Assembly (NCBI GenBank): GCA_010909165.1
Contig: MU008179.1
Coordinates: forward strand, 434,001-498,000
DNA: 64,000 bases
Origin: Anthoceros angustus
Taxonomy: Eukaryota; Plantae; Anthocerotophyta
Direction of reading: 5' to 3'
Shown piece after piece: positions 3,231-34,504 of this stretch. Within the stretch, counting starts at the first letter, position 1; each line of letters begins with the position of its first letter. Both the position numbers and the translations under genes were made by a program. The notes beneath the pieces were generated by a model, which was not told the origin of the DNA, did no database searches, and saw only the letters and a list, made by a program, of their open reading frames with translations.

Positions 3231-3344
3231 ATGTGTACATGTGGCATTCACATGCCTAAAACACCGCAAGCAACCCGGCGATTGTCCACCACACCATTCG
3301 CACATATGGCATCCATGCATGTTTGGCATATATAGGCATCCGTT

Positions 3345-9130: not shown

Positions 9131-9449
9131 CCGTTTCTACATTTTCCAAAGTCTGCCTTTCCGTGTCACCAAAGTCATCACCTTCAACTTGCAAAACAGA
9201 AAACGCTGGAGCCTCGTCATGTGGTAGTGTGCCGCTTTTCATCCCATATCGTCAATGCGCTTTCAACCGGCCGCCCGGGTCTCATGGAGTCCTTCTATTC
9301 TCGACCTTCTTTCCAAGCAAGCTATACACTTGCATTTTCCTATCAATGCCACCCTCGCATGAATGACGTGGAAACGAGCACGGACGCAAACGGGTCTCAA
9401 ACGCTTGGCCATCACCGCCTGCTCGATGAATGTTATGAGTAGTTAGACG

Positions 9450-10589: not shown

Positions 10590-12603
10590 TGTGAAGGTGG
10601 TTGTCTTACCTCTTGCTGCTTTTGTCGTCAGATCATCCATGAGAACTTGATCAACGCTCCCGCCTCAAATAGTGCCTCATTAACCCCGAGTTCCTTCTCC
10701 GCAGTTGTAGAGAGGTTATGGCTATTAGAGCCCTAGTTAGCACGTTTGAAGATTATACTTTGATTATTACTTAAGCATGTGATATGAATAGGCATCTTAG
10801 ATTAAGTTTTTATAACTACTTTTATATGCTCTTCAAAAACATTGTCTTGGTTCACTTTTTTTTCAATTCATACACTCTTTGTTCTACGCTTCCGTGAAAT
10901 CCATGTGCCTTCACATGGTATCAGAGCCATACAATCGTTGATGTCAATTTGTAGTATTCTAGATTCTGATTAGGATTAGGTTAGAAATCCTGGATGTGGT
11001 CACCCCCACACAGAACGTATAAACACATCAAATATCCTCGAACAAATGTTTCTTCACCCTCAAACATGGCCTCAAGAACACCTCCTCAACTACTCTCAAA
11101 GAATACCTCCACGATAACAACAACAATCAACAACACAATTAAGATTGATTTTAAGGAAAAGACATTCTCAGAACGACAACATTTGGTCCATGCGATGCTG
11201 CCCATTCTTGAGGACAATGACCTCGACAACACGGATGGCACTTATCCCAAACTCACAACAAGAACAAATCCAAAGATCGCATGGATTTGACGGAGAAGAC
11301 CGATAGAAAGCAAGAAATGTGATCTTATCTCGACTTGATAGACCATCCGCCATCACGTGATGTGGGCTGTAGATGCAGCCATAGCATGGACCAACCCTCT
11401 CTACGACGCAGAGATGCAATGAGCGTAATAATGCAACAAAGGCATTTTACCAAATGCGTATGGTGAAAGTGAAGTCGCTTTCCGAACACATAAAGAAGTT
11501 CGTGGCAAGACGGCTCGATTGGCATCTTGTGGGATGACGTTGATCGAGGCTCAAGCAGCCATAGCTTTGCTAAGTTCTCTTCCCGACGCTTATCGACCTT
11601 CAAGACGACACAAAATGGAGTCATAAACAAGCACAACTTGCGCCCAAAAGTGGGCAAGGTTCGATTTCACCACATCATAATTGGGGCTCTCATAGAGGAA
11701 GAAGCCATACGTGGTCAAGCATCAAATGCCATGCCCCAAGGTCAAGCTTCCTTTGTAGCACGAGGTGTAGGGAGAGGAGGACGCGGACGAGGCCATCCTC
11801 CTTATAACAACAGGCCATCTTCATCATCTTCAGCACCAAGGAGGAAAGGAGCCTGCCATTGGTGCCAAGTAGAAGGCCATTACAAAAAAAAGTGTCGTAA
11901 GAAAAAGGCTGGAGAGCCTAGAAGAGGACTGCCACCTTCAACAAATATTGTACAACCAAAATCACAAGTACTCTTAGCAGTATATTTGGCTACCTCCAAG
12001 AATGACACATGCAGTTGATACATTGATAGTGGAGCTTCAGCTCACATTTGTCATACAAGATCCTTCTTTTCATCTTACCACCCTTGTGAACCAGGCATAT
12101 GTGCAACTCCCAAGGCATAATCATGCAGAGAAGTGTTCCATATTCTCAAGCCTAAGCGGTGTGGCGGCCGTCAATGGCTTATTGAAGCCGTTCGAGAGCC
12201 ATCTTTGACCTTTTGGAATCTCACAAATATTAGGCGAAGCTATTTCATCGGCGACTACATCAAGGAGTGACACGATAATCAGCTAGCATTCTGGTGTCAC
12301 TCCTATGAGGGGCCGTCGTAAACCCAATCAACTGATCTTCGTATCTTCTTGAGGCACACGCATGTGCACATATTCCCAAACAACCCGTCAGAAGCTTGAC
12401 GACAAGGCCAGCAAGATGATGTTTGTGGGATATACTGAAGGAATCAAGGGATATAAGTTGGTGAACCCCGAGACTCGGGTCACGTATTCAAGGAGTGTGA
12501 TTATTGAGCAATTTAGGCACGGATAGCGGAGAGGAGAGAAATGGACCATCGTACAGCGTCTGAACCGGTCCAGAAAGGTTGCAATTCCTTTGGATTGACC
12601 TTG
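10590..12603 (+). mobile_element. Ty1/Copia 5' part: LTR 10590-10915, Met-tRNA PBS, gag, zinc knuckle, protease, integrase/SH3 remnant
   Basis: LTR bounded by TGTGAAGG...CCTTCACA. PBS TGGTATCAGAGCC at 10916. CHWCQVEGHYKKKC (~11855), YIDSGASAH (~12017), MFVGYTEGIKGYKL (~12418). Confidence 0.9.
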
Positions 12604-13469
12604 CCCTAGAAAAGGGCACCCCTATATTCTGATCGATGTTGCAATTTTTTGTTACACTTCCACATTGCAACATGTTTTGGAGGGTTGGTATTAAGTTTGT
12701 TAGTTCTGTCCCGTTTGGTGCGCCATCTTAACACGAACACGCACTCTCTCTTCCCCCTCCCCTTGGTACACCCCTCTCACAAGCATTGTTAATAATTTCC
12801 CACCTTGTTACGATCGTGTTGCAATTTCACTTCCAACTTCGCATGGTTTGATGGCTTGGTGTTAAGTTGGTCCATTCTTTCTCTTCCTTCTCCCACCATC
12901 CTAACACAATGCTTGGTCTCTCACTTCATGTACCACTTCAAAATTGCAACACTTTATGGTGGCTTGGTGTTCAAGGTGTCCTTTTCTTATCCACTTCTCA
13001 CCCCATCTTAACACAATACTTGGTCTCTCTCCTCTCCTCACCCTCCTATTTATTGCCCCCTTATCACACCCTTTTATACTCTTTCACTTCTCCTCCTCCT
13101 TCATGGTGAGAAGGACCTCCCCTATCACGCCATTTTATACTCTTCCACTATTCCTCTTTCAACTTGCTTGTTACAATGACCTCTCTCTCGCTGTCCTTCC
13201 TTCCTTTTACCTCCTTTGCATATACTCAATATACATATATATGTTTGTAGGCTTCAAGACATAAGTATGTATGCGTTTATATGTACACATCCATCTGTTA
13301 TACTTCTATTATATTAGTGTATTTACATGCCTCTTTGTATACGTATACGTCGTATATAGGCATCAAGACTTGTTTATATAATAATATATATGTGCTAACC
13401 CACGTCACTCTCACCTTACATATCTAAGTGTTTGATTTTATTGACAATTTAAATCAAATTTTTGGACAC

Positions 13470-15900
13470 TTCAATCGTCCTCTATCCCTTGCACCTTTGT
13501 TTCCACCGATGCAATACGAACTCCACGTGATATGGGCATATGCGGTGCACCACCAACATGTGCCTCGAATCAAGCGACACGCCACTTGGTGACTCTTGGA
13601 CCAACACCAATGGTTTCGTGGTTCCTCCACATCTTCCTACACCTATCCAAATGACCTCTATAACCACAATTACAATTTGCAATGTCAATGCTAGGTACCA
13701 ACCATTCCTATGTCACTTGCGCCACACCCTTCTCGCCACCATCCCACCTCACTCCTCTTGCAGCTTCAACACCGTTGTCTTTGCTTGACCCTCTTCGCCA
13801 AGACCTCCTCGCTTCCCTGGTGTGGTCCACCTTCCGTGGTGGCATTCGACCCACTAGCCTCAATGGCTAGCCCTTCACCCCGGCCCCATAGGCTGCCAAA
13901 TCACCACTTCCACAATGCAGCAAACGAATAGCATTCAATCTCTCGATCCGGGTTGCCACCCTACTCACGCTTTTGACACGGATCGTGTGATACGCCTCGG
14001 TAACGCCATCACACCTCCGGGATCCCCACCATCCACGTTGCCTCCGGCATCACTTGACGGTGACGCCCCCTGCTTGGCACCTTCCTCCATCTTCCTTCTC
14101 TCCACCGGGGTTCAGGCCTTCCTTCACGACTGGCCTTCACCTTCCACCTTCCCTTCCCTTCTTCCCCGCAACATGCACACGCATCACCACACTCCACGCC
14201 CCTATAGCGAAACCTACATATCACAACCAAGCATTCCATTAACCGTCGACTATTTTACCACTCCAAGATTCTAAGATGTCGTCCAATCCATGCCTTGCTG
14301 CCCACTTCAACTCATCCAGGTTGCGCCCTCCCGTTGGACATACCGTTTTCGAACTCCTTTGCTCCTCTGGACCAAAGGGATTCGTCCCATGCTCGGCTTC
14401 TTGCCGACGCTTCTTTGTGGTGTTGGCCACACACCCCATGCGAACGTCACCACGGCTTGCTGCCCTTTCTCCATGCCTTCGTGCTCACATTAGGCGGATG
14501 CAACCATTTTGCATCCTTCCCTTCTCCTCCACTGCGCTTGCCGCACCTTCTTGCCCACATTGTGGTTCCTTGTCCGCGATGCACCGCAAACCGGCCACAA
14601 TATCCTCGCCTATACTTGCAAACTCATACTCTACCTTCCTCACCGCCTTCTCGCAAACTTTCGTCGTGGCTCGACCATGGCACCATCACTCCATTTTGCA
14701 CACACTAGCTCCAACACACGCGGTGGAAGGCCTTCCTCACTCGTCCTTCCTCATCGGACGACTCTTCATCCTCCTCCTCATTCTCTATCCACCCTCCATC
14801 GCATAAGCTCACGCCATGTACACGCCACCACGCCCATGTAGCACACACGGCTATGACATCTAATGGCTTACCGGCCAGTGCTCTCAATTCTCCAATTTCA
14901 TGCGGCAATGTAGTCGGCATGTCTTCCTCGACCTCATCCGCCATCTCCACATCTTCCTCCTCGCTCCCGCTCTCCCCATCCTCGCCCGCGGTGTCCTCCT
15001 CTCACCGCCCTCCTCACCATCATAGGCATGCGCTCCTTGGCCCTCCTCCCGCGCGTCCACCAGACCAGTCTCCACTCCCACTGCGGAGTCTCCTCCCCTC
15101 AAAGGCTCCCTCCGCCACGTTGTTGGGGTTGTCCGTCGCCACCGCGAAGGTCCACAAAACGTGCCATCTCTCTCGGCACCGGTCACCCTCTTGTGCACCA
15201 CCACCATGCTCCTCAAGTTGGACACGCCCTCAAGCTCCAGACTAAGGCCAATGTCCTCGTTCCCTCGGATGTCGGCCTGGCATCCTCCTCGCGACTTTTG
15301 GAATCTCTCCTGCAAGCAGTGTAGCGTTAGCTCCCCACTGTTGGAGACACCCTCCACTTCCGGCTTTCGAGCGCCCGCCTCTTGGCCAGACTCCACTCTG
15401 TGAAGGTTCTCCCCTCCTCCTCCTCTCGCCGCTTCCTCCACGCCATGGGCATCCACCCTCTCCAGTGGAATCGGCTTTCTCACGACCGCGCCCACCTCAC
15501 TTGCGCTTCCACCATCCCGTGTGCTTCCATCCGGTTGGGCGCTTCTCGCTCTGCGCCAAGTCCCTTGCTGTGGACCATTTTCCGGCTTCCGGCCTCCCTC
15601 TCGGCGGCATGGCGCAACGGCGATGGGCCCCTCTCCTCCTTCCGCGGCGGCGTTATGGGCGACATCCACGCGGATTGGCGGCGTTTGTTCGAGCTTAAGC
15701 GGCGGCAAATCCTCAAAGTCAACGTCCCAAACCATGGTCGAGGAAGGCCAACCGAGTCACTGCACATGCACAACGATAACCGCGACAAAGTGAACAGGAA
15801 CTCGGCGATGGATGGCACGAGGGAGGTGAGGTAACCTGTGGTGATGGGGAAGAGGGGCAAGAGGAGGGGGGGAGGCGAGGCGAAGTCCTAGGGCATGCCA
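13470..15900 (-). pseudogene. Frameshifted ORF of unknown function, copy 2
   Basis: Colinear with 762-3230 and includes the 283-aa ORF at 14884-15735. Confidence 0.45.
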
Positions 15901-16054
15901 CCGGTGCCTCATGCATGCTTTTCCCGGGCACAAACTCGGAGTTTGCGCCCACCACCTATAGTGTACATGTGGCATTCACATGCCTAAAACATGCACAACG
16001 GCGATTGTCCACCACACCTCTCGTGCACATATGGCATCCATGCATGTATATATA

Positions 16055-16815
16055 GGCATCCCGTGATGACGATTTTCGTAATCCAAGGACAAATTTAGCC
16101 CATTATGGATTACCATATCCTCATCGAGGAAAATAATTTCCCTTTGCTCATGCGCATTTCGTGGTCCAAGGACAAAACATTCATTATGTATGGTCATTTC
16201 GTGACCCAAGGACAAATGTTCTCATTCTCATGACCATGCGAGTCAATTTTGGCCATTCCGATGACCATTTCGAAGCCAAGGACAAATGTTTCCCATTATG
16301 GAAGATCATTTTGTTCGAAGGACATTTAATTTGCCATTGTTCATTACCATTTCGTGGTCCAAGGACAATACATTTTGCCATCATGAAGTCAATTCGTGAC
16401 CCAAGGACAAATGTTCCTCATTCGTCATGACCATGTCTCATGTCCATTTTTTGCCATCAATGACCATTTCATTAGACATGAATGTTTCCATTGTGATGAC
16501 CACGTAAGAATGACAATTGGTTGACATGGTTGATGACCATTCTCCATTGACATACTTTTGCCATTTTGATGGTACAAGGACATGGATCAGAATACGTCTG
16601 CCATACCACGGACCAGCAAGGACAAATTTTTTTTTATTGCCATTTCTGCACAAGGACAAATGATTCTGTAGAATATTCCTCATCCAAGAACTTTTCATTA
16701 ATCATCCCCATTCGACCCAAGGACAAGTGTTCGAATGGCCATTTGTCCTGTGAATGCCCATGTGTGGAGGAAGGGAAGAGGAGAGGAGGAGACTGCATAT
16801 GCCCGGACCATGCAT
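16055..16815. repeat. CCAAGGACAAA repeat array, copy 2
   Basis: Same motif array as 3345-4115. Confidence 0.85.
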
Positions 16816-19599
16816 GTGTCATTTGATATATTATGCCCTTCTGATACCACATGCTTCCGATCCCATGCCATCTGTCCCACATTATGTAACTTGTCTCCAC
16901 GGTGGCATTAAGCTTAATAAGGTGAAAAAGATTGTGGCATGGCATGGTAAAACATGCCATGTGATGGTCGGCACCTTGACGCTCGTTCGTGATCTACTTC
17001 ATCTTCTACACCATTGTGCAAGGACGGTAGGTGGCACGTGAGAGCCATTCAAGCAAACTAAATGCCCCCATTCATTATGCCATGAATGAAGGACCGTCAG
17101 TATGTGAATTTGCCATATATATGCCAATTCGCGTTCTATATAATGATGTGCATCGTTCGAGACTCCTCATGCCTCCACCAATCAATGGCGTAAGCGTGTC
17201 ATGTATTCACACCTTGGGAGGGCCAGGTGACTCGGCGTCACGTCACTGCCGCAAAGGATATCCGGACCTTGGGAGACATGACATCTACCCGTGTTCCGGC
17301 TCCTCTTGCGGCCCGCCCGCCCCCCATGAATTTACCGCCGTCCATTGACGGCGCGCCATGAGACTGCCATGTCTCCTTTTCTCACATGTGACGGCTGAAA
17401 TTCAAGATCCTCTCATCCGCAACCCGATGTGGCACGGTGGACAGGGGACAAGAAATAAATGGTGTTCCGCTTTAAATGTCACCACCTTGCCCTTTCACGC
17501 TACTACCTTTGTTTTGGTCATCTTGCATCCGGCGAGCTTGTCTTCCGGTGAAACACGCCTCTCGCTCTACCTTGTGCCGTCTATGGCGGACATGTGCAAG
17601 TATGCCGCAACGAGCTTTCGAAACCACCGTGGGTATCCGGTAGCTGACGGGCGTGTGTGCATGTCTCCATCTTCGCCGGAAAATCAGCCGATGGCCATCA
17701 AGGATCATATGGGAATGTTGGGGCGGTGTCCCCGCCACGGCGTGTCATCTCCTTTGCTATCCCCTCCGTCTTCCGTTCGGTGGCGGTGGTTCCTTCTACT
17801 GCTGCGGGCATGGTGTTGGTGACCGCACGGTATGGATTGGGGTTCGGTGGGCGCGCATGTGAACACTTTTGTTTGGCCCTTTTCTCCAACCTAAACGTGT
17901 ATACATTTGTGGATCATGTTGAAGTGTTTGCACATCGTTGTTGCTGGTCTTTGAAGCCGTGATGGCCATCAAGGGCGAGGCTGCGGTTCCACTGTCAATG
18001 GCGATGGCCATCAAGGATGATGGACGGAGGTTGCTCTCCTCTTGTCGGCCATCAAGGACCGGTATGGAGTGCCGCCGCCGCTCTTCTTGTCTCGGATCCG
18101 GCGTCGTCGTGTGACTAGGGACGGTTTATACCTCACAATGTGGGGTATATGATTACCGTAATTAAGCGTTGGGATGGGAAAGTCTTCTTCTTTGATCACT
18201 ACGTGTACTTCTCATGTCACCCAATATAAAACTCGATGACACTCATGCTTGGCGGAATGGATGGGTATGGTTTGGTGCCCGTTCATACCGTTGACGGACA
18301 TGACAAGTCACCGTTGCGCGTCCCTCCGAGTCACGTAATAAACAAAGTATGGTGATTGGTGCTATAGCTCTTTGTCTCCTCCTCCTAGATGCACAAGGCA
18401 TTCTCTAGATTCGGTGCATACCTCGATGGAAATCAAGGATTGCGGTCGCGCAAGCCTCGGAAGTTGAAGGCGAGGAGATTGAGAGAGAAGGTAAGGTAGA
18501 TGTACACCACCCTCCCGTGGACCGATCCGGCCCCGGGTGATGCGAAGGAAAGGAAAGTGGAGGAGCAATCGCTGTGGCGGCGACGGCATCCGGGCGCGAC
18601 GAGTGCCAGCTCCAAGCCACATTTCCTCCATGGGAAGAAGAGGCCGCATTCAGCTACAATTTACAGAGGCCACGATCCAAGGAGGAGGTTGCGAATTGAG
18701 TCGCTGCTTTTGGATAGAACAAAGCTGGATGTGGGGCTTCACCTCCGGCGGCCGTGGCTCAAGCCACACTTCACAAGAATGGAATTGGGATGCGTTGGAC
18801 GAGGAGGCATGGAGCACTCTGCGCGGGTTATGCCCTTTTACGAGAATGGCGCACGCAACATGGGAGCTTCTGAGACTTTGAGACAATGAGCTCAACACTA
18901 TTCCTTGCGTAGATGAAGTGGACATGAAGGAGGTTGTTTACACCAAGGGGAAGGCGCCTCCTCCACGTTTTTCTATTTGCTTGCAAGCTTAGGGCGATCA
19001 AGGCCGTTGTCGAACTTGCATTGTGTGTAATCAACTTTAAATCAAAACACGCATCCCCAAATGCAATGACTACGTGTCAACCATCTCGACCGTTGGTGCC
19101 GACCACCAAGCTAGCCGGTAGCACATCCTCCCTTTCCATTGCGGTCACCCCTACACTCGCCCAACTCCGCCCGTCGGGTGAGTCCTACGCTTGACATAAC
19201 GCCGGCCCCACTCCGCTAGCTTGCCGCACCGTGAACGCGTGCATCGTCAACCGCGTGCTCGCGCCGCCCAATGAGTTGGGATTGGAAGGCGGTGGTGGCC
19301 TGGGTCGCGCAAATTCGCTGCTCATGTCCGGCGAGGTTCGAGTTCTTTATGCATCGTCGTGCATCTCGGCGTAGCCTTTGCCCGATCGGCCGACTTACCC
19401 TCCAGGTGTCATCACGGGCGGGATCTCCATAGCGGTGGCGTTTGTGCTTCCGTCCATGGTTTACGCAAGCGTTCCAGTCCTACGTTTATGCGTGTTTATG
19501 GGTCATGAAGTCATGATAGCACGGTGGGGGCGGGGCGTTACGGATGTACCACCTGCTCGCGTGGTTGCCGTGCCTACCGGATCACCACAGGAGGATGCC

Positions 19600-21730
19600 A
19601 CGAAATCACGGATCGGTGTACATGTATTGTCCGCCGCTGTCGAGAGCTCGCGAGCTCGTATTCACACATTTCAAGAATTCACTGCGCCACTCCGAGCACC
19701 GCGCCGTGAGTTCTCTCGCATCAATGCAAATGCACTCCAATTCTAGCTTTAAGGTGGCTTTTTTTTGGTCGGCGAGACACGAGCGGCATAGAAGAGCGGC
19801 CGTCTTGACGGCGTCTCCCCCAGGATTCGGATACGGGCTCGAGATGCAGCGGGGGAACCGTGGCCATCCTACACTAGTAGTTCCGACGACGAAAGTATGG
19901 ATGAGGTTCGAGGTGATGATATGCGGCGCGCATGGGCGAGTTCTTTGGAAGCCACGGATGTTGCGATAGCGGCGGGGATGGAGTCCAGCGGCTTGTCGAG
20001 CGGGCGAAACGTTATACCACATTGAAGAGGAAGTCCAATCGAAGAAGCGGCTAAGCGCCACCTTTGTTGTTCTGTGTGGCAAACGATGTATGACATCGAT
20101 GGCGTCGGCGTAACATCACTTTTAAAGCTCTTAAGTGTGGATATTTTGCGATTCGAACAAGTAGAAGGACATGTACGAGGCAAAGTCGATGTTGCACATG
20201 TTTGGGCCAAGATACGTGAAAATCCATGCTTGTGAAAAGATTGTATTCTATTCGGGTGAGTACGCGGCAGCGTCCATTGCCCCTGGCAGTACAAGGAAGG
20301 GTTTGATGAGCGAGATTTGTTCCCAAGGTCCTCGGCATTTCCTCAAGACGCGATTGAAACGCATGTTGAATAGGAATAATGATGACTTGGTATGTCGGGA
20401 GGCAAAGCGAGAATGGGGACATGTCCATGATGGCGAACAACATGGAGAGTATTTGATGCGATTGAAGGGTTCGGGATGAACCTCGCAACTTGAGGTTGGC
20501 ATTATGCAGCGCGCTTCAACCCCTTTGGTCACAGTGCATCACGTCCATATGGCCAGTTATGCTGTTATTCACAACATGCCTCCACAGGCTTGCACAAAGG
20601 ACGCCCATGTCATCATGCCTCTCATTGTACGGGCATGGTAAAAATTTTGATGTTTATATGGCGCCCTGGTAGAAGAACTGGAAGAGTTGTGGAGAGGGTG
20701 GACATGGAAGACTTTTCAATACCGTGAACGATCCTAGGAGGCATTTTAGGTGCAGCGGTCTTGAAACGTCATTGCCGACTACCGAGGTTGGGCACCGGAT
20801 TGCAAGTGAAAGGGACCCGGCGTGTGTGGATTGCTCGGACTGGATTCCCTATTCTCATCAATTAAAAAGCGGTTTATGTTGGCAGAGGTGGTTGCCCGAT
20901 AGCGGACGGTGGGAAGACATGGGTACGATGGATGATGCGGAACTCCGCCACCCAGCCACCAACGCGTTTGATGATGTGGTGAAGATGTAGTGCAGAGAAG
21001 GTGCGCCACCGCCGAGATCCGTGAGGAAATTTTGGAACGCGGATGTCTTCTCTTTAGGGTGCTCCCATATTGGCGTCACCTTCTTGTGATGGCGCCAAAG
21101 GATGTCATGCACGTGGAAAAGAACAATGCGAGGCCATATGGCACACTTTGGCGAGGCGAGGCGACCTAGCATCAAGGATGGACATGGAAGCCAATGGAGG
21201 GAAAAGGTGGTTGTGGCGGTAGGGAGGCGCCATTGCCCGGCGTCTTACGTTTTGGACGACCTCCGTCAAGTCATAGAGAATTAAACGCATAAAGCTGCCC
21301 ACGGGATATGGGTCTAACATAGGAGCGAAATTAGAGGGGGCAAAGTGGCAAGAAGTGCCATGATCGCACATCATGCTGGAAATCATCTTCCCATCGCCCT
21401 TCGGGGTATAGACCCGTGAGGTGTACAAGGCGGTTGTGAAATTTCGTCAGACAGATGGATTTGCCACGGACAATACCGCCATGAAATTCAAGCACAACGA
21501 GAAGAGGTCATGGGTGATGTGCTCTTTGAAAAGCAATTCCTCCAAAGGTCTTTGATATATCAACCACCCTCATAATACATTTAGTGGACGTAGGTGGTCG
21601 ATTGGGCCCGGCACACCGTGGATGTACCGGTGGATGTACCGGCTTACATCGATGGTCCATTGTGTAGCCCTAACTATCTACAAGTCACAGCTGCCCGGAG
21701 GATCATCTACTTCAACCAAATTAACCTTGA
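19600..21730 (+). pseudogene. CACTA TnpD transposase remnant, copy 2
   Basis: SVYMYCP, YVKIHACEK, KNFDVYMAPW, DVMHVEKN and GPAHRGCTG/WMYP motifs, colinear with copy 1. Confidence 0.9.
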
Positions 21731-22017
21731 ACTGCACTGCTTTACATTTTCAAAGTCGCCTTTCCGTGTCACCAAAGTCATCACCTTCAACCAAAACAAA
21801 ACGCTGGAGCCTCTGTTCATGCGGTGGTAGTGTGCCGTTTTCATCCCATATCACACTGCTAACTTTCTTCAAGCGGCGGTCATTCCCGAGGTCCGGTGCA
21901 GGGAGTCCTTCATTCGACCCTTCTTTCCAAGCAAGCTATACACTTGTATTTGTATCAATGCCACCGCTCAGACGATCTTCTTTGCCCAAAACTTTCCAGG
22001 GCCCCGCGAAAACTTAT

Positions 22018-22900
22018 TCAAAGTATTTTCTTGAACTCATCGGCTGCCTCCAACCCGTTGACTCTTTGCAACATATACATTGAGCATCATGCGTATTTGT
22101 CAATGGCCACAACGTTCCTTTGAATCTGAATTCTTGCCATCAAAAATGACCCTGATCCTGCAGACAAAGGCCAATAACGATCGTCTTTGTTGGAGAACAT
22201 GTTCACCAACATGCCCAATAAGCCCAAAGGTTTCTGATATGGAGATACGACCATCTTATAACCAGTGTGGTAAATGAGCTTCTTCACCACGCCCATGTCG
22301 GATAACTCTTGGGAGCACCTGTTTGTTGTCTTTCCTGGCGAATAGAGGAGCGTTTCCAACATTGGACTCTATATTCACCGCTTCACCTGCAGTATTCTGC
22401 TTCACGACCACCTAGGTGGGATGTTAGTTTTCTCCATACCTGTAGGTTTGTATGACTCCTTCTCCACACCACGACCTCAAAGCCTCCCTAGCAATCACCC
22501 CTCCACTCCATGCATCAACTATACTCCCGGAACACATTGCTAGTGTTTCTTCTCGTTGAAAGAGCGATGAGCTCTCAATTCTTCAACGAACGGCTTGTCA
22601 TTCTCATGTCGTCAGAACCCTCGAGGAGGTCGCAGGATAGAAGAGAAAGTATACCTCCTATGGCAAGAATCCTTTCATGTCCAAAATATCGCGATGCACT
22701 ACCTGGTATGCAACTTTGTCGGAAGACCTCGGAACTCCCGAACTTTCAAGCCACCGCATCCATGTCCTTGTCGCCATTCGCTTGGCGCTCTTCTTCCATG
22801 CATTTCCAATTCACACGCTATACAAAATCTCAAATGGTTTTGGGAACACAGTGGTCGAGACCTACTTGAGCGTAGTGGAGTCGCGGTCGGCGCATCAAGA
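22018..22900 (-). pseudogene. Beta-class N4-cytosine/N6-adenine DNA methyltransferase (N6_N4_Mtase-like), disrupted as assembled
   Basis: Frame VSPYQKPLGLLGMLVNMFSNKDDR...AGSGSFLMARIQIQRNVVAID (22087-22250) fits the QKP..L...L...S..gD.VLD.F.GSG.T...R..ig.(D/E) signature. Upstream are a VWRK element (~22430) and an IL.(D)PP.G-like candidate catalytic motif (~22615-22640). Confidence 0.72.
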
Positions 22901-25559
22901 AGGCGCCCATGGGGAATAAAACAAGAAGGAGGCGCGGCCACCAAGGCGCGGCATTCTTGATGCGGTGACCGGCAGAGAAAGTGGCCGGCCGATCTGACAA
23001 TATAGAGTTGAATATTCACTTACCATTAGCGAATCTTGTTTGAAATTTCGCCAAGAATATAATAATTTTGAAGGTGAATAATCTCAAGGGGTTTTCATAA
23101 ATAATCTCGAAGGGGGTTTGATGGGCCCTAAAACAGCTTTTGAAGGCATTGCGAAAAGACCTAAAAAAAGGTGTCACCCAAGAAAGTTACTACTTTCCAT
23201 CCGGCAATGTTTGTGTATCGAATGGTGGTCACAAACTCGAACCTCACGGAATAATGCAAAGTAAGGAACGGTGAGGAAGGCCCTCACGGAAGGGGCTGTA
23301 AATTAGCTTTGGAGGAAAATGTGGTTTTGTTATGACACCACAAAAGCCACTTGTGGTATTTCCCTAACACAAGAATATCAAGAACTGACTTACAACATTA
23401 ACTGGGGACCGGAAAACGAGATTTCAACACTCATCCCCGTAGTTCAATCCTTCGTCATCACTTGGTCGACTTCCCTCCATTGTCATCATTATCTTCGCCG
23501 CACTTTGACCTCGCAGTTGTAAGCCACGCGCAACTCGCAGAGCTTATCCCTTATCGCTTTTGTCCAATCATACGATGTTTCGGAGGAGTACCCCACACTG
23601 GACCGACCAAATGCTGGGCTCGATTTGACTGATTGCTTCTAAGGTTAGCCTTCATTCCAAGGTTGCTTCTAAGGTTAGCCCACTGACTTTCGACGGAGTG
23701 CCACGCATGTGGGTGCGGGAAGGAGGGCCACAATGGGCATGCGGAGGGAGGGCGCCGCCGCCGGCGCCTCCGCCTGCTCCACCCGCTTGGGCATAAGGCT
23801 GGTGGTAGGAGGGAGAGCGCCCGGCCTACCGGGCGCCTCCTAGCACCATCGTCGGCAAAGGGAGGGAGCTAGGGAGGCGCCGTGGCGGCTCCTCCTCCCA
23901 AGATGCCCTCGGGTCATGGGCGCCGGCCTGCCGTGCCCAACACGCCCGCCCGCATGGCTGGCCGGGCCGCGCCTCCCAAGACATTTCCATGGGCTGCCGG
24001 CCGCCCCTAGCACCCCGTTTATAGGCGCCTGTCGCCATGCCCCTAGCACACCGTTATATACGGCGGCCGGGCCCTTCAAAGACGCCTCGGCCTGGCCATT
24101 GGCGCCACCAACACGCCATGCCTTGCCCATGCACTACTAGGAAAACGGGCCATTATAGGGCCTTTTTTAGTGGGAGATTTTGTGCTCAAGTCGACGATAA
24201 CGGCTTGGTTTCATGGATTATTTTCAGATAGCCATTCATATTGCTGTGGAGCCAAGAGCCACTACGTATTTAGCCATTGGCTATTCGAAGGACGTGGCAT
24301 AACGAAAGCTACTTTTAATACTTAGGGCTCTTCCGGTTGCAACACGCATAGATCCGATCAATGACTTTACAACAATGAATGTGCTTTATAACAACGCATA
24401 GTAAACACCATCACGCCTGCTTACAACGATTTTCTTTTACAACGGCCCATGGTCTACTTACAATGGGAAGTGGTTTACAACGCATTGTCAAGTTTTACAA
24501 CGGGCTTTTACAACGCAGACATACATATACAACAACACGCTTTACAATGAGGATCAAAGGTATGTGAGCATTCATGCATATGGTATAGGGTTTGAGGAAG
24601 GGTTCAGAACTCGAATGAAAAGGTGGCGCTTTATTGAGAGAGACGTGCTCACCCAAAAACTATGGGTCGGTCACCAAAACAAACACAACATCAACACCGA
24701 ATTAGCACAACAAAACGGGATGGCGACGATCTCACTCGTAATCTACGGATGCGGACGCTGCCAGTCCCGCCTCCGTGCATCCTCTCCTCACCCACCACAC
24801 GCCAATTCCGGTGTTCAATGCCAACCACCTTCTCCAATTCGCCACAAGGAGGTGGTAGCCGTGAAAATCCTCAGCCTGTGCACCCTTCCATTTCCTAACA
24901 TCCGTCCGATTGGCAAACCGCACCTCCTCGCACACGCCTAGCTTGTCAACGTGTTGTGCACCGCATGACGCCAGATATTGGTGAGAAAGGGAGCCGGCTT
25001 GTCGATAAGAGCAGCTCTTTCGGTCGCCCTCAAAATTGCGATCCCATGACCAAGTTGAAAGCCATAGCGCTAGCTTTGCTTCCCTTCCACAACCAGAGCC
25101 GCAAGACAAAGAAAAACCGTGGAACCCATAATCGAAATGAGAATTGAGCATAAGCGCACACGCACAAGAATCAGAAACGAGTTCTCAAAGATGCAACTTT
25201 CCCCAAAGCGCGAGATCTATAACACTACCTCTACAACACTACAAATCGGCACACAACCGATCGGAAAACTCTGGTCGCTGCAATCGCAAGGTGGGCGACA
25301 CGATCTCCGATCAGAAATGAATGAACTCACAACAGTGAAGTGGCTTGAAGGCAATGCCCTTTTGTTGCCGATTAGGCAAATGAGAGGCCGCCAGTGTCTT
25401 GGACCTCGAGTACATTCGCATGCCGCAAGACATGGTCCGGAAGCCAAGTTCAAAATGACTAGTCGAAAAACTCAACATCAACTGGTCATGGCCAAGTACC
25501 ACAAAGTTTATGACCAAGAGGATATGTATTTGACCGAGATGATATGTATTTGATCGTAC

Positions 25560-25860
25560 TCTGCCCAAGACCCAAGGAACCCTAAACCATGGTCCGAAAC
25601 TAGAGAAAAGCTAACTCATGTCCGAACCCAAGGAACCGTAGAAACCATGTTCCTAAACCCAAAGTGTTAACACTAAACCATTTTTCCAAACCCAAGGACT
25701 ACTCAAATCATTGAGTTTAACACTACAAAACCCAAGGACAATGGGGAAACCCATTTCCAGCATTTATAGCCCAAAGGTCACGAACCTCAAATGAAATCAT
25801 GGCCAATATTATAAATCAAACCCCAAAACCCAAGGACATGGGGAAAACCCACAAGCATAG
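25560..25860. repeat. Imperfect tandem ACCCAAGGA...AAACCA repeats inside the nested CACTA
   Basis: acccaagga(a/c) recurs about 5 times at 25568-25840. Confidence 0.7.
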
Positions 25861-26299
25861 CGTTTCAACTTATCCTTGGGTTTCAAAACTCGTAACTACG
25901 TTAGGTTAAATATTCAAATACCAAGCTCAATGCGGCTATAAATGCGTGAATAATGCATGTAAATTAACCTCTCAAAAATAGCCACACGAGACATCGGAGG
26001 AGAAGTGTTCTTCGAGAGAATGCGCTGGAAATACATGTCTTCGCCAAGATGTAAAAGCACCGTAAAAGGGCCCCGTACGCCATCTGCTGCCAGGCATGGA
26101 CTAAGGGAGAGAGTACCGAGACATCTATGAACGCGTCCGCACACCGCCTCTTGTGGTCGTGGATATACCACGTCCATCCCGCACCGAGGAGCGCAAATGC
26201 AGAAGAAGACGGACAAGTGTGGTAAAGGCAAGTTTAGGGTCAAGGTATGCATGAGGCGTTGTTCTTTCTCCGTGGGCTTTTCATTCATGTGTTTGTGTT

Positions 26300-28750
26300 G
26301 TTGTTTTCGTGCCGTTCGCCAGAGCTCTGCTTTTCACAACCAGCAATGGGTGCGATGCCAAAAGCGAAGATAGAATGTCATGCCGAGGCGGACATCGAGA
26401 CAAGGCGATTGGCAACGGCGGCCTCACTGGGATGCGCCCGAGGCCACACCGGAAGGAATCGACGCCGGACCCAACGATGGTTGTGAAAAACAAGAACTTG
26501 GCGATGTCGCCGATCTTAGGGCCGGCGCCAACACCTAAAAGGTAAGTGGGTGCAGAAGAAGTTGAGGACGCAGTACGTGGAAGAAGACGCCAATGGTGAC
26601 GAGGATGAGCGAACATGTCAAAGACATCGCAGCAAGAGGTAGCAAGGGGTGATCGTGGACGAGCTAAGCGCGTACGAGTTAAGGGTGACAAATGGCAAGG
26701 CAAGCGGCTACCAAGTTCGGTCGCAGATTTTGGGAGGCCAACGCGAGGTCGGAGAGTAGGACCAAGCACGATGGAGGGAGTTTAACCAAGAGTCTCAAGG
26801 GCAGAACAGATCACCAAATGCCCTGAGGCATTGGGGTTGACGGGTTTTGGCTTCACCCCATGTTCGGGAGTCGAGGTCCAAGAGGCGAAAGATGAGGAGG
26901 ACAAGTTCCACAAGGTCCGCCTTACCTCGATGAAGATGTCCTTCCAACACAAACCTCACTTATGGGAAATGTGCCACAACAGGGTTTGGCACGAGTTTGC
27001 ACAATGGTGACCTCGGACATCCGCTTTGGATTGTCCAAGAGTGGGAAGGCCCACATGCCGACATGGGTGTATGCGGCTGCCGGAATCCCCGCCCGCAAGT
27101 GCCGCCGACCTCGAGGCAAGGAAGGACGAAGAGGAGGCGACCTTAACCAAGGATGCTGAGGAGGCCGTTGAGAAGGCCGGCGAAGAGGAGGCGGAGTTCA
27201 GGACCGGTAGGGTGTGATTCGTGACCGACACCATTGCACCAAAAGGGACCAAAGAACTAGCCTGCAATGGTTTCGCGTCGAATACACGGCCAATTCTAAC
27301 GAAACAATTTCAAGGTGAGCTCAGACAAGATGAAGGAGTGGCACGACCACGCGTGGTGGTTTGTGATAGCCTCCGTGATCGTGAGATAGCCGATATTTTG
27401 GAAGATGCAGACCGGGAAATGGGAAGGCTGTGATCCGAAGTGGATTCATTTGCTTCTAGGACACCCTTGCCGCCGACGGCGCGGATGATGCGAACAATAC
27501 ATCGGGTCGCCACACAACTGGCCGTGTCAACCCCATCATGAGCATCACAGGGGATGCTCATGCCGGGTACATGGCGAAATCCCTATGACATGTATGGACG
27601 TTGACTTGAGGGCAACAAGCGGCACCAAAACGGAAGAGGAATTTCGACATCCAAAGATGAGGTTCCGCTGTCATATGCATGAAAGCGTAAGTATTCGTCT
27701 GTGAGGAAAATGGTCAGCATGGTTGCGGCGAGGAGGATCCATGCATGGTTGCTTTACAGTTCGTATCGTGCCGATTACGCGACATGCAGGTTATTTTACA
27801 GCTGACAGCCGGGCTTATCAGTTCGAACTCAGTTCGATACAGCCCCGATAGTTCGATAATGAGGTCGGGGTGTAATTCAGCTCGATATTGTGCCCGGAGT
27901 TACACTCGCAAAAGTAGGCTTGTAACTCCATGGTCATTTAATTTGGGTTGAGGCTGGATTTCATCATGAGGTTATGTTGCATGTAATGTTCTAAATCACA
28001 ATTGTCTATGTGTTTTGAATGTTACATATACTACGTGACTCGCCTTCGTGGTTTCCAAGGATAGGGTGCACTACACAATCCGACACATGTGCAACCCCAT
28101 CGTCGATTTTGGGCACACTCGATCTGAAGTGCTTCTTATTGAAAGCACCTTACGCCAAACAATTTCAGCCCATGGAGCTTTCAGTATTGTAGCTCGCTTA
28201 GTGGCACCCGAGGCATTGGAAGAATAACTTGAGAAAGGAGGCTAGGCACTTCTTACATGGGAAGAAAGGGTGCGATAAGTATGTGCCCAAGAGCTTGAAG
28301 AAGGAGCATTGGGATGTTCTCTTGAAACAGAGAAAGATAAGTCGGATGGTGTTGTTGCACCCTCAACAAAAGATTGCTGCGGTGAGGGGGAAAACGTCAG
28401 GTAAGCCATATTCTTGCTTTGGGTTTGAGGTCAAAAGCAATTCATGGACAGAGCCAAGTTTGATAGGCAAGCAACTTTAGAGGAGATCAAGTGGGATCTA
28501 GGCATGGAAATTGGTTGAACAAGTCGAGAGCGCATTGGAAGGAGACTAAAACCACAATTCCATCCTTGGGTCCTCAAGTGGATCAAGGGAAAGTCGATAA
28601 GGTGAATGTCTCGGAATCATGAAGCGGATATGAGAGTGCAGAGTGAGCAGTGTAATGGAGGCAATCAAGAAGAGGGTCCGGATGAAGGTTTCATGGTGGA
28701 ACATCTTCTTGACAGCATGAAAAAGGCTAAGAAAGCCTCACCATAGTTCA
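26300..28750 (+). pseudogene. TnpA-like (Ptta/En-Spm) remnants inside the nested CACTA
   Basis: WKNNLRKEARHF...VPKSLKKEHWDVLLKQRKIS (~28215-28345), and a TGRV..TD.....DADREMGRL..VDSF segment (~27200-27450) resembling TnpA C-terminal domains. Confidence 0.5.
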
Positions 28751-29779
28751 GTCGGACAATAGAGCTTGCACTTCCACCGTAATTTCATGTAATCTTCAAC
28801 CGTAATTGTTGAAGTTCATCTCGTTATGTGGGCTTTGTTCATGCATGTTTGTGAAAGAGGGTTGGCGGTTGTCAAATGGAGTGACAAACTAATCTACTAC
28901 CGATTGTAGGATGCATGGTGTAGTAGGCTTTGCCAAGATAGCGTAGTGGAGTTTTTACGCACTGTAGATTTACAACAAACTTGCTTCATTGCAACGCATT
29001 CGCTTTACAACGGACCCCTATCTCTACTCCCAAAACTTTACAACGAGAGCCTTTTACAACGGGTTTTGTAAATTACTTTAAACGAACTCAGACACGTGGT
29101 CCATTTACAACAAGGTCCGCTAAAGGTACATACTTATTACAACAGGCTCGTGAAAGTTACACGATTACAACGCCATTCTTAGGTTAATCATGGTTAACTA
29201 ACGCCAACTAGTTTGTGGTAATCGAATCATATTAACCCCGCTTAATAAACCGCGGTCAAGATTTAACTCTAGTATATTAACCATGGTTATTGAAGTTGTA
29301 AAATGCGTTGTAAGTGTACCGTAGTAATGTCCGTAAAGGGGTTCCGCGTTGTAAAAGTTTAACCAGTACGGACCACACCGCTTTACATACACCGTATGGG
29401 TTGGACAATACCGTATTCAATACATAATATAGCCCTCAGATATGCGTATATACTTTTACTATGGATATTACTAAGGTGTGTTTACTACGGGGTTTTACTT
29501 GACCTACTTAAAGGGCGTTGTAATGTCTGTAATTCCAAGCAAAAGTATCCTTTCCTAGTAGTGGAAGCCTCCCCATCAAGACGGCCCAGGAAGGTAGAGG
29601 GGCGAGGTGGCACCGAACCCGAGTTGAGTTTGACGACGCCGAGACGCGTGAACCTCCCGCAACCCGGATGCGAGTTGGATTGTGCGTGAACCGAATCAAA
29701 TAGATGAGGAGCTATTTCGTTGGATGAGGTTGGTTTTCGCATCGTTAACGGCAAGTGATGTCTGCGTGCACACGCTCAA

Positions 29780-32215
29780 GTTTGCGTGCCGGATGAGTGC
29801 ATGGTGGACAAACGGGTATCACAGTGCATCTGCATGCCGGGCGCGCCTGCCGGGAGACAAGGGGAGGCAAGTGAGGGTCCGTAACGATTGGCATAAGGGA
29901 TAGTGGAATCGCGAAGGGTAAGCCGGCCGAGGCAGCGGACAGCGCCGACCGACGCACAAGCACTTGATCTGGAATGGCGCAAGCAATTTCTGGAAGGGGG
30001 TGGTGTTCTGACACGCGGTGATGACAGTGTGCAGCGTCTAGATGCTGCTGGCGCGGTGAGTGCGGTGGACAACGATGCACTGGTGAAAGCCTTGATAAAC
30101 AAGCATGGGGTCAAATGGCTGAAGGAGGCCATGCAAAACCACATGAAGCGGGGAAGGGACTGGCGTATTCGCGGCCGAGGGCAAGGCAAGAATCTGGTAC
30201 CGTGAGGACGAAGGTTGTGAATGAACCGGGGAGCCGCAAGATGGCGCGACGCTCAAAGAGGAGAAAGCATAGTGAAACTCTCAAGCATTCCTGCACTGTG
30301 GTCAAGTCCAAGATAAGCCGACACTGCAGATGACGCGACACGCAACTTTGCGTGTGGAAGTCAAGGCGCAATGTAGAGGAAATGGGGGGGAGGACATGGA
30401 AGAAACCGAGCATGGTGGATGACGAAGAGGAAGATGCACTTGCATGGGCGGATGGAGCTGAAGAGGAACGGAAGTTTGAGCCATCAAGTACGAAATTGCA
30501 GCAAAAGAGAGGCTAGCCAAAACGGGGATGGGTCCAAACCCGTGGGGAAAGGGAGGCGTGGCTGGTGGTGAGGTTTGAGAATCAAGATGGGCGGTTCCCA
30601 ACGGAAGAAGAGGAGTATGGGAGGTTGAAGAGGACGATTTCCATGCAGTGGGTCCGCGATAGTGGGGGTTCTCCGAGTTCACTGGGTAAGGCAGGAGTGT
30701 ATGAGAAGACACTAGTAGGTTCAAGCCATTGCAAGGAGAACAAGGGAAATGACCATTTTGCTTAATGACATTGAATTGGAGATGGATCCCGATATGGTGG
30801 CCTTCCGAGGCGACGGAAGGAAGGGGTGGGAGGCAAGGGTGCACGTGGTGGCGACGTGGACGGATGCTAGGGCAAGGAAGGGGCTTGGGAGGAGGAGGCC
30901 AGGAGGCGGGGCACAACGAGACTTGGAAGGGGGAAAGGCGACGATGAACAAGAGCGTGAAGTGGAGACGGGAAGCGGGCATGAGGAGGCGTGAGGGAGGG
31001 AGTGGGGAAACGAGTGACAGTGTGGACGTAATTGTGGTGCCCGCGACACCACGATCGCGCAGGGTTGGTGGAAGTTGCATGCCTGGGAATGGTGTCAATG
31101 GAGGCAGGGCGACGAGGGCTGTGTGAGGTGGGCAGCAAGCAAATACTGGAAAAGAGGTGGAGGAGTGCCCGAGACGGCAAGGTGACGGCCATGTATACGG
31201 AGGGTGGAGGCCGTTGGGAGGAGAAGGAGACGCCAATGGAGGCGTGAACAAGGAGTGGAGGGCGTGAGTCGGGTGGTGGAGCAGAGGGGGCGAACCGTCA
31301 CTGTGAAGGAAACACACTGCAGGCACTATGACAAAAACGCAGGGGGACTAGGGAGGAGCGGTGGCGGAGGACGAGGGGATCACCCTAGCCCATGGTGGCA
31401 GGGCAAAAGGCGCAGAATTAGCATGAGGCGTATGTCGAGGGGAGAGAGAATGAAGGAGGACTAAGAGGGCATCATGTGTGTTTTGATATCGCAAAGGCCA
31501 GGTACGATGGAGGCCGGGGGACAGATGGGGGACGCCGCAGACAACATGGACGCAGCAGGGAGGCAGTCAAGAGGACGATGTGCCTAATGCTGTGACACAT
31601 ATCTTGCAGCCCTGATGCCGAGAGCATGGACGCATAGTGGAGCCCAGCTGAGGCAACGCCACCGCGATAAAGGGTGGAGGCGAAAGAGGAAAATGGAGGA
31701 GGAGTAGAGGCGGCACCCGTGGGCGAGTGACAGGGCACGGGTACATGGAAGAAGGAGGACTAAGAGGAAAATGTCCAGCAAGAAGGGCGTAAGAAACGAG
31801 GAGGGACTGAGGGAAGGTAAGGCAAATGGTCCGCTTTGTTGTGGAAACCCATTAACGCTGATAACTCATGATGGCCATGCTGGTTTGTATGTGTAACGCA
31901 GCGTATGTGGAGGGAAGTGGAGGAAGCTTGCACCAACGCAAGCAAGTGGGAAGAAGAAAATTGGGAATCGAACGGAGGGCGGAAGTTTCGTAGGTGCATA
32001 CGATGACGAGTAGGAAGTGCCTTACATGGAGGCGTAAAAGCATAAGCCGCGATACCAAATCTCCGCACAAAGACAATCTTGTAGGGCATAACCTCATGGT
32101 GATGCGTCACAATAAGGTGATAGGTGGGGACAATATCTTCTTGGGCGCCATGGCGGAAGGATGGCTATTGGTGACGTGGAAGGACAAACCGCAATGCTAT
32201 AAAGTAGGGGTATAA
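29780..32215 (+). pseudogene. Diverged homolog of the unknown CACTA-associated ORF, inverted relative to copies 1 and 2
   Basis: Reverse-complement similarity to 760-2100 (e.g. 31600-31680 vs 1135-1200). The C-terminus WKD....C.K resembles the end of the 762-956 frame. Confidence 0.4.
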
Positions 32216-34504
32216 AGGGCCGCTATTTACACAAATAGTAAATACAAAGTATCGTATCATGAATATGTACATCAAAGGTACGATGTAATACGATGATATA
32301 CAAACTTATTTTATATGAAATTGAATACGTATAGCACTTAGAATAATCTAGTACATTTATCACCGAGATGATACATGCGATAGTATAAGGATGTATTGAC
32401 ATGTATTTATATGGTCGTATTGATGGGCAACGGTAACTACCAAAACGTGGTATTTCAAAGGGCAAAAGTAAAAGGAAAATGGTGGATGGGGAGGAGGTTC
32501 TACCAAGCCTCCAAAAGTGTTACAAGACCTCTTGTAACATTTTAGATGTTGCAATCATGTTGCAATTTTGAGAGAGGCAAACCACCTCTCACTTCATCTT
32601 AACATAATTGCAACACCATTGCAACATGATTGCAACAACGGCCGTGGTATGGTTTCCAAGCCAAAGTGTAACAAGGGGCCCAAAAGTGTTACATGACCCC
32701 AAAATTGCAACATGAGTGTTACATCCAGGGTCCAAATCTTAACATAAAGTGTAACATAGGGTGCCCTTTTCTAGTAGGGTTGCGATGTGAGTGGGAGCGA
32801 TGATGACCAAGTTGTTGAGTGGGAGTCCGAGGATCATGGGAGCGCATACCGCACACATTAATCGCACAAGGGCGGTGCTCATCTGTGTACCCACACCACA
32901 TGCCTGACTTACACCTCCTTAGATCCCTCAGACCATGGGCCCAGAGCCCTATACAACTCGGCACTCAGCTCCACTCCCTCACATCCGCGTGCATGATCCT
33001 CATGATCCGCCAGCACATCGTGGAATGAAGCCTCCTTGGCCCGTAGCCCCCGCCGCGTCGCCCACAAGGGCGCGCACTCCCTTGGCATGAATCCTACCAC
33101 CTTGAAGGTGCGTGACATAACAGGGAGGGACGCGCCTCCTCGATGCTCAACCCGGGCGCACATCCGATCACGCGCTCCTCCTCGCATACGGTAACCACGT
33201 GCCCTGCAAGCCACATCCTTGGAGCCCGCTTTACCTGCTTGTGCACCATCTGCTTCTCCGCACCCATTTCAAAATAATAATTCATTAGTTGGGCCTTTTA
33301 CCAAATTCAAAATGAACCTAGTTTAGATGTCGATATTTACTGATGTTTCTCAAAGATAGGGTTTGTCTCCAACCCCATTTTGGCCCCAACCATCCGTAAA
33401 TGCACATGTCTCATTTCACTGCTTGATTTGCGAACCCACAGCCCATGCATCCGAGCCCAAGAAGACCTGCCCACCGTCCGACAAATGCGGACACACCTTT
33501 GTAAAGTGGCCGGATGATCATGACTTATGCTCCAAAGAGCTGGAGGCACCAACGCCCGCAGACTTATACTCCAAAGAGGTGCAATACACCGGGTTTGGAG
33601 AGGGTTGCGCTAATACTTGTGTAGGCAAGCACTTTCGCCTGTTGCTTGTGCACACTTGCCACCGCACCAACACTCACATCAATTCTCTTTTCAAACCCCG
33701 TGATCGAGCAATCCTGCACGGCAGTGCATACTGCTCGCCCTCCGTTGGAGATAAGCACTTAGATCGCAGATTAGCCTCATGCAGAATTGGACAAGGTAAA
33801 GGATGGTGAGGCCTCCTCAACCGCTCTTGATCAAACTCTTCGTAGCTTACATTTCTTCTTGTCAAGTCCGCATCGCTTTCAACCTTAATCTATCCATGGG
33901 TGGCACATGGAGCAAGTCGATCTTAAATTCAAAATCTCCGAAGCTTGGCTATAGTTCGCCTCTGAACACCTAGTCGCACCACCATAGTGGTGACAAAGGT
34001 AGCCTCACTAAATATTTTGGTCAAAACCCCACCGGGCGACCAGCCCTCTTTCTTCAGATACTACCGGCTCTCACTAGGGCTCTAGGCTGCAGATGCTCTT
34101 ATACTTGTGTTCGATCCGCATGTGCTTTCATTACTCAAGGACAAATCATCTATTCTATTTATTTCGCTTCTCTCGCAAAACATTGTGAAACATTGTCGCC
34201 TTCAAAAGGTTGGCCATTAGAAACCACCATCATACATGTCGAATTTTGGAAAATGTAGCTCATCTAGAAACCAAGGCCTATGCATCTATACGCATCAAAC
34301 TCGAATGAGCTTGACATTTGGCACCAATCAAAGAGATCCAAATTGCAAGTCACTAAGGGGCACATAGAGTAAGGCCAAAAGGTTTTACATGTTGTATACA
34401 AAGCGAATGTGGAATATAACATCAACCAACAAATGATTTTCAAAATAATATTCATGACTTTACGCCTAGATACGGGATGATTTACAAATTTTTCAAACCA
34501 CTAA

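Follow-up and report, generated by a model that had tools for sequence, protein, structure and literature searches.

Inside an old transposon in Anthoceros angustus lies a broken gene that resembles those of prokaryotic DNA methyltransferases, which raises the question of whether a plant CACTA element once carried a DNA-modifying enzyme of its own. A sequence-only reading of the window, by which we mean the whole 64,000-nucleotide stretch that was analysed, had proposed just this, namely a transposon family bearing a writer of 4mC or 6mA. We examined what the gene fragment is, whether it belongs to the transposon, whether its breaks are real and what its product might have done.

The longest open piece of the gene, 91 amino acids on the minus strand at 22087-22362, holds the QKP and GxG (SAM-binding) motifs. 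YQKP lies at 22239-22228, preceded by S-P (S-P-Y-Q-K-P) and with all four of its residues unchanged throughout the family alignment, and the motif I loop of FxGxG type, AGSGS, at 22161-22147; the positions that had been reported for the frame and for both motifs were exact. In a frameshift-tolerant alignment with the minus strand, residues 15-308 of a relative, P0001, span 22875 to 22048 (score 179); together with tblastn, this delimits the whole methyltransferase-like domain at 22048-22875. The alignment path requires about nine frameshifts and four in-frame stops, with some of the frameshift positions in the far N-terminal part probably over-fitted. Upstream of the open piece, and on the same strand, VWRKL (the 'W.K' element, 22425-22439) is equivalent to the family's invariant C-V-W-x-K-x-N, and ILRPPRGF (22615-22638) stands, in decayed form, at the motif IV position where the family has L-D-L-P-R-G-L. 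Ahead of it, VVHRDILDMKGFLP (V-V-H-R-D-I-L-D-M-K-G-F-L-P, 22661-22702) corresponds to the strand and helix that precede motif IV, for which the relatives have I-I-N-A-D-M-L-K-M-P-E-F-L-E-P, and two further landmarks, C-S-G-S-I-V-D-A-W (22534-22508) and L-L-Y-S-P-G-K (22350-22330), are collinear with the relatives. Taken alone, the N-terminal half (22363-22860) scored 57 against P0003 and 50 against P0001, compared with 31 +/- 5 for shuffled DNA, and these scores were reached by 0 of 200 and 1 of 200 shuffles, respectively; the W.K and IL-RPP-RG segments that had been noticed upstream are present and collinear with the relatives. The minus strand keeps the circularly permuted motif order of the beta class (motif IV equivalent, W.K, QKP, GSG). 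Across the same interval the plus strand encodes nothing recognisable, nor does it continue TnpD, the neighbouring transposase gene. As it stands in the window, the gene copy is dead and does nothing.

We used profile searches with the 91-residue piece to place it among known proteins. Its match to Pfam PF01555 (N6_N4_Mtase) is at E 0.0041 and 17.5 bits, under the cutoff of 26.7, and covers positions 163-211 of the 221 in the profile. Four independent results bear this match out. Of 1.84 billion representative proteins, searched exhaustively with HMMER, only five matched (E 6.5e-7 to 5.9e-4), and all five of these relatives, P0001-P0005, are above the PF01555 cutoff, at 30-56 bits. The window piece, itself under the cutoff, is linked to these relatives at E 6.5e-7 across the whole protein library. 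P0001-P0004 are 44-46% identical to the piece. In tblastn the relatives match the window only at 22335-22036 (E 4e-15 to 8e-11), in alignments that continue through the stop at 22087. The best matches in a translated search of phage genomes were all methyltransferases, with a top E of 0.01 at 31% identity, and 96 of the 100 nearest ESM-Atlas clusters were PF01555 (score 0.94, 182-188 shared features). The best PDB match by sequence was the beta-class adenine methyltransferase M1.HpyAVI, at E ~0.9, with QKP, GSG and R-N aligning sensibly. An NCBIfam scan of the piece gave one chance match only, and a word-match protein search with it, a method limited by word matches and query length, gave no relatives. 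Nor did the family profile find close relatives among viral and metagenome sequences, where it returned ordinary phage or bacterial methyltransferases that align through their C-terminal part only, at 26-52% identity.

The fold was modelled with AlphaFold2 on P0003, an intact relative, from a 13-row alignment, so that the query was this protein and not the window's broken copy. The model has a pTM of 0.61 and a mean pLDDT of 54, with the core strands and the C-terminal half at 70-89. A Foldseek search of the PDB with it gave 38 matches at E <= 0.001, every one a beta-class amino DNA methyltransferase (best E 1.9e-7, probability 1.00, TM 0.31-0.58), including CcrM, rotifer N4CMT, TTHA0409, M.BceJIV, M.MboIIA, M.RsrI, M1.HpyAVI and M.PvuII. 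The sequence profile, for its part, aligns only the C-terminal 50-70 residues to solved beta-class enzymes. On the evidence of the model, P0003 is a protein of Rossmann-type beta-class methyltransferase fold, and we regard it as almost certain that the pseudogene derives from a gene for the PF01555-type beta-class amino-methyltransferase fold. The class assignment first made from the position of motif IV ahead of QKP and GxG is upheld by relatives that pass PF01555 and by the resemblance of the P0003 model to CcrM, N4CMT and M.RsrI.

To see where the window piece falls within this class, we built a maximum-likelihood tree from the C-terminal 87 columns, with 24 bacterial and metagenomic rows. 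The piece falls in a clade with P0001-P0006 (support 98/97), separate from all 24 of those rows, and stands beside P0001 on a branch of length 1.71, as expected for a pseudogene. P0001-P0004 and P0008 represent at least five paralogues, all from a single run, SRR33208241, on contigs of 1.9-16 kb, with protein identities of 41-50% among P0001, P0003 and P0008 and of 41-58% among the paralogues. Broken frames occur in several of the relatives, L003 and L004 among them, as is typical of transposon-borne genes. Contig L003 also bears what looks like a host gene, for an ESD4-like protease whose closest counterparts are in Selaginella (70% identity) and a moss; this places SRR33208241 in a land plant, probably a seed-free one. 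A conserved coding region with no assigned function lies upstream in the relatives (L001:3-572, L003:4647-5285); neither frameshift-tolerant alignment nor relaxed tblastx detected homology to it in the 2 kb upstream of the pseudogene. No ParB-like or other N-terminal domain matched Pfam at E 10 in the upstream ORFs of the window or of L003 and L004; ESM-Atlas, an unreliable search here, gave no ParB in the relatives' upstream region either, and decay or divergence could hide such a domain. Nor did the longer pieces around the pseudogene or in the relatives give a Pfam match to a SET domain. The pseudogene is, then, a dead member of a small land-plant protein family with the beta-class methyltransferase fold, one that seems not to have been described before.

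Membership of the fold class does not settle what the family did, and here motif IV is the critical element. The catalytic tetrapeptide (D/S)PP(Y/F/W/H) is absent from the window, which has R-P-P-R-G, and from the three relatives that cover the motif (P0001, P0003 and P0008), all of which have L-D-L-P-R-G-L, that is, D-L-P-R-G. The bacterial matches of the same search have D-P-P-F or D-I-P-Y at this position. It had been suggested that ILRPPRGF becomes ILADPP once three missing bases are restored. However, the window's I-L-R-P-P-R-G-F lies two substitutions from the family motif without any indel, so the restoration is unsupported; with D-L-P-R-G in the relatives, it appears as an artefact of expectation. 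The aromatic residue of motif IV bears on amino-group methylation. Its replacement by arginine makes methyl transfer to N6-adenine or N4-cytosine by this family doubtful, as far as the motif allows a judgement, and the same three relatives speak against calling the protein a 4mC or 6mA writer. Conversely, QKP, the GxG loop and R-N are kept among the paralogues, which argues for a retained fold that would still bind SAM. Marchantia DN4MT1 keeps a catalytic motif of TSPPY (bioRxiv 10.1101/2021.02.12.428880), and the present family, with D-L-P-R-G, is therefore not of the DN4MT1 kind.

We then asked how the pseudogene relates to the transposon. TnpD copy 2 and the pseudogene are both held by a CACTA-superfamily element of 20,176 bp (12604-32779), bounded by terminal inverted repeats of 22-24 nt at 12604-12625 (plus strand) and 32756-32779 (minus strand), the right one with a 3-nt insertion relative to the left. 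Both repeats begin CCCTA, one base off the canonical CACTA, and they contain a 16-nt exact inverted pair, unique in the window, at 12606-12621 (plus) and 32759-32774 (minus). A 3-bp target-site duplication, TTG, flanks the two ends (12601-12603 and 32780-32782). Clusters of the motifs TGTTGCAAT and ATTGCAACA lie at the left (12578-12944) and right (32547-32705) subterminal regions, the right one with a perfect 20-nt inverted pair, and GC skew is mirrored at the element's ends, the left lying at about -0.24 to -0.30 and the right at about +0.39. The element inserted into a remnant of retrotransposon pol, which forms its left flank and retains an integrase SH3-like domain (12353-12523, plus strand; Pfam SH3_retrovirus, E 3e-12). 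The TnpD-bearing left half of the element, at 12725-21965 on the plus strand, is 84% identical by self-BLAST to a first copy at 15-9353. In copy 1 the Transposase_21 (tnp2) piece of TnpD is at 7854-8192 (plus strand; Pfam E 1e-11, 44.9 bits) and the DUF4218 piece at 8872-9363 (plus strand; Pfam E 1.3e-9, 38.3 bits), corresponding to ~20460-20800 and ~21485-21975 in copy 2; TnpD is decayed in both copies. The pseudogene stands tail-to-tail with decayed TnpD, and from 21965, where homology between the copies stops, it is 53 bp to the end of the frame first noticed, in agreement with the close spacing originally described, and 83 bp to the last aligned codon. We consider it very probable that the pseudogene lies inside the element's borders. 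The inverted-repeat borders and the clade shared with land-plant paralogues also bear out the view that the host of the gene is a plant transposon and not a bacterial contaminant.

The right half of the element is less informative. Copy 1 loses homology at 9353, the equivalent of 21965 in copy 2, probably because a retroelement starts there, and the 64-kb window contains no second copy of the right half (21966-32779). With copy 1 ending before the position of the pseudogene, the window gives one view only of this half. Pfam searches of the longer pieces of the element, on both strands, gave neither a SET domain nor TnpA. TnpD seems to end soon after DUF4218, and the element may therefore be a rearranged, non-autonomous derivative, of a kind in which foreign pieces are common.

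The many breaks in the pseudogene could reflect errors of assembly rather than decay, and the sequence-only reading had suggested that the window's error profile left room for intact copies. We used the two TnpD-bearing copies to examine this. Between them there are 982 substitutions and 316 indel events, only 116 of the latter being one base long. Of these one-base indels, 17% fall in homopolymer runs of at least three bases, and such runs make up 15% of all bases. One-base indels thus show no preference for homopolymers over the background, so the breaks are not homopolymer artefacts and that suggestion is unsupported; TnpD, moreover, is as broken as the methyltransferase-like gene. Judged from the assembly alone, the frame breaks look like real decay.

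We can now state the explanation that we prefer, to which, taken as a whole, we would assign a probability of roughly 0.6. The locus is on this view a dead plant gene for a beta-class amino-methyltransferase-fold protein inside an old 20.2-kb transposon of the CACTA/EnSpm superfamily, carried along when this copy of the element inserted into the retrotransposon remnant; its homology, the fold of an intact relative, its state as a pseudogene and the borders of the element are established. In the ancestral, active element the gene would have been an accessory gene, by analogy with the amino-methyltransferase genes that Plavaka/EnSpm and Sola1 elements carry in algae. The product is predicted to bind S-adenosyl-methionine, from the GxG loop and QKP conserved among the paralogues, and would act on or bind the element's own DNA. 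Because D-L-P-R-G replaces the catalytic D-P-P-Y, the product may lack any methylating activity on exocyclic amines; it might be a non-catalytic binder of DNA or SAM, or have another substrate.

How general such an arrangement was is a separate matter. The idea of a CACTA cargo holds for this copy, which sits inside an element beside TnpD, but at the level of the transposon family it is unsupported: copy 1 ends earlier, TnpD is missing from all five contigs that bear relatives (1.9-16 kb), and on one of these the relative's neighbour is the ESD4-like gene of apparent host type. That the methyltransferase-like gene was regular cargo of this CACTA family is possible, at slightly less than even odds. 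The more specific proposition seems rather unlikely, namely that a land-plant CACTA family regularly bears, tail-to-tail with TnpD, a methyltransferase-fold gene with conserved D-L-P-R-G, whose product would make an unusual mark or be a SAM-dependent, non-catalytic binder of element DNA, as a counterpart of the algal Plavaka and Sola1 methylases.

The capture of gene fragments by plant CACTAs is well established, and it is from this that the principal competitor to an accessory gene arises. On this account the CACTA lineage took up, once, a fragment of a methyltransferase-like gene from the host or from another transposon (a Sola1-type element, for example), and the fragment never worked as an accessory gene. 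Such a capture would explain why only the methyltransferase domain is detectable, with the relatives' upstream region missing from the 2 kb upstream, why TnpD looks truncated beside the pseudogene and why the relatives are unlinked to TnpD on their own contigs. However, nearly the whole domain is present as one collinear block, the missing upstream region could have been erased by decay, and transposons of the same superfamily bear amino-methyltransferase accessory genes in red algae; we consider one-off capture unlikely. A related possibility is that the pseudogene came in with a remnant of some other transposon, again perhaps of Sola1 type, that inserted into the CACTA element and then decayed. 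The roughly 10 kb of the element's right half without recognisable content would leave space for such a remnant, but the pseudogene is not enclosed by any inverted- or direct-repeat pair that could mark the ends of a nested element, neither the window nor the relatives gave a ParB-like part, and no second transposase was recognised between 21966 and 32779 by Pfam, though Pfam has no Sola model. We regard this nested origin as distinctly improbable.

The simplest dismissal of the locus would be that the resemblance is due to chance, or that the DNA is a bacterial contaminant or a very recent bacterial transfer. The window's own Pfam score, under the curated cutoff, is the one observation in its favour. 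Against it, the link to proteins that themselves pass Pfam is at E 6.5e-7 in a search of 1.84 billion proteins, the motifs are collinear across the whole domain, and inverted repeats mark the ends of the plant transposon that contains the gene. It also groups with land-plant paralogues and not with bacterial or metagenomic proteins, and the best phage identity is 31%, compared with 44-46% for the plant relatives. We therefore take chance, contamination and very recent bacterial transfer to be effectively refuted.

If the gene was indeed an accessory gene of the element, it would not be the first transposon-borne amino-methyltransferase, since EnSpm/Plavaka and Sola1 cases have been published from red and brown algae. 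[quoted passage not shown] 2025, bioRxiv 10.1101/2025.02.11.637652). The present locus resembles the PAG2 case, compared here by its description, in being a giant EnSpm/CACTA-superfamily transposon with a gene of amino DNA methylase type besides its transposase. It differs in that we found no SET, ParB or 2OG oxygenase, and in having a land-plant host and a plant TnpD (tnp2) transposase. In Ectocarpus, Sola1-1_Ec32 carries a gene for ParB plus an N4C/N6A methyltransferase opposite the transposase; its authors note that transposons of green and red algae have comparable proteins (PMC12477816), and the accessory protein was proposed to bind and mark the DNA of its own element. Both there and here a prokaryote-type amino-methyltransferase gene lies on a DNA transposon, on the strand opposite the transposase, whereas the window and the intact relatives gave no sign of a ParB-like part, and the carrier here is a CACTA with TnpD and a 3-bp target duplication. 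More broadly, Iyer et al. (2016) described several amino-methyltransferases of microbial eukaryotes with links to transposons and to ParB, and judged the methyltransferase domain of the DIRS1 retrotransposon to be catalytically dead but retained (PMC4738411). The DIRS1 domain is a precedent for a non-catalytic role, though the enzyme family and the transposon class differ from those here, as they do for the TET/JBP genes on fungal KDZ/Plavaka elements, which are also nucleic-acid-modifying domains on eukaryotic transposons. We found no published account of such cargo on a land-plant CACTA, the published cases being algal elements.

Host genes and bacterial enzymes of the same class provide a second set of comparisons. 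The N4CMT of bdelloid rotifers is a host 4mC writer of PF01555 type (PMC8885841; PDB 8s9m/8s9o). It shares its fold class with Marchantia DN4MT1a/b and with the present family, and is among the best structural matches of P0003. DN4MT1 and N4CMT are, however, host genes with demonstrated activity, whereas the present family has D-L-P-R-G, is multi-copy and is partly broken. With CcrM, M.RsrI, M.MboIIA, M1.HpyAVI, M.PvuII and TTHA0409 the family has in common the motif order, QKP, the GxG SAM loop and the fold; unlike bacterial and phage beta-class enzymes, it has arginine for the aromatic residue of motif IV, no restriction partner and a eukaryotic context.

The value of this particular locus is limited by the fact that its copy is dead and that linkage to a CACTA is seen in one copy only. 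The family nevertheless poses a biochemical question, through its conserved D-L-P-R-G, of whether the protein is active, retargeted or non-catalytic. A transposon equipped with a DNA-modifying enzyme of its own could determine its epigenetic state. Such elements may plausibly also have brought methyltransferases of prokaryotic type, the 4mC writers of Marchantia and rotifers for example, into eukaryotic genomes. If a land-plant CACTA bore such a gene, this kind of cargo would reach the best-studied superfamily of plant DNA transposons.

The left half of the CACTA family occurs twice in the window, in direct orientation and at 84% identity (15-9353 and 12725-21965). The first copy extends past the start of the window, and from the offset its left inverted repeat is expected some 106 bp ahead of position 1. 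Comparison of the two copies gave 529 transitions to 453 transversions and 316 indels, two thirds of them of at least 2 bp; only 100 of 934 CpG sites had TpG or CpA in the other copy. This spectrum of divergence is odd, being atypical of the decay of plant transposons.

Homology in the first copy is lost where a decayed LTR-retrotransposon gag-pol remnant begins (9354-12603). Within it are a stretch rich in lysine, a weak zinc knuckle at roughly 11850-11900 and, at 12353-12523, an integrase SH3-like domain; the remnant is in turn interrupted by the 20-kb CACTA that carries the second copy. The arrangement is a nesting in three layers. Towards its right end, the 20-kb element has a dense array of TGTTGCAAT / ATTGCAACA units (32545-32725) with several hairpin-capable inverted pairs, one of them a perfect 20-nt pair (32547-32566 and 32618-32637), and this array probably represents the element's subterminal protein-binding repeats.

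About 700 bp upstream of the 5' end of the methyltransferase-like pseudogene lies a G+C-rich, low-complexity block coding for arginine and proline (23554-24133), which is open on both strands and has no family match. Elsewhere, an open piece on the plus strand (36979-37293) contains I-D-F-S-Q-N-Y ... Q-S-M-H-W-H-N-D-Q, which looks like a transposase motif; Pfam gave no significant match to this piece. Local repeats lie within 53861-56433 (53861-53952 and 55782-55873, 92% similar; 53952-54222 and 56203-56433, 72% similar).

In the land-plant contigs holding the pseudogene's nearest relatives, a conserved coding region adjoins the methyltransferase domain on its upstream side (L001:3-753 and L003:4468-5285). 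It matches no Pfam family and is 58-66% identical among paralogues; the full protein of these relatives is probably far longer than the called ORFs. At 5-9 kb from the broken paralogue of L003 lie an ESD4-like SUMO protease ORF, 324 codons uninterrupted and 70% identical to that of Selaginella (L003:11918-12892, minus strand), and a RecQ-like helicase fragment (L003:15394-15961, plus strand), which may be either host genes or transposon cargo.
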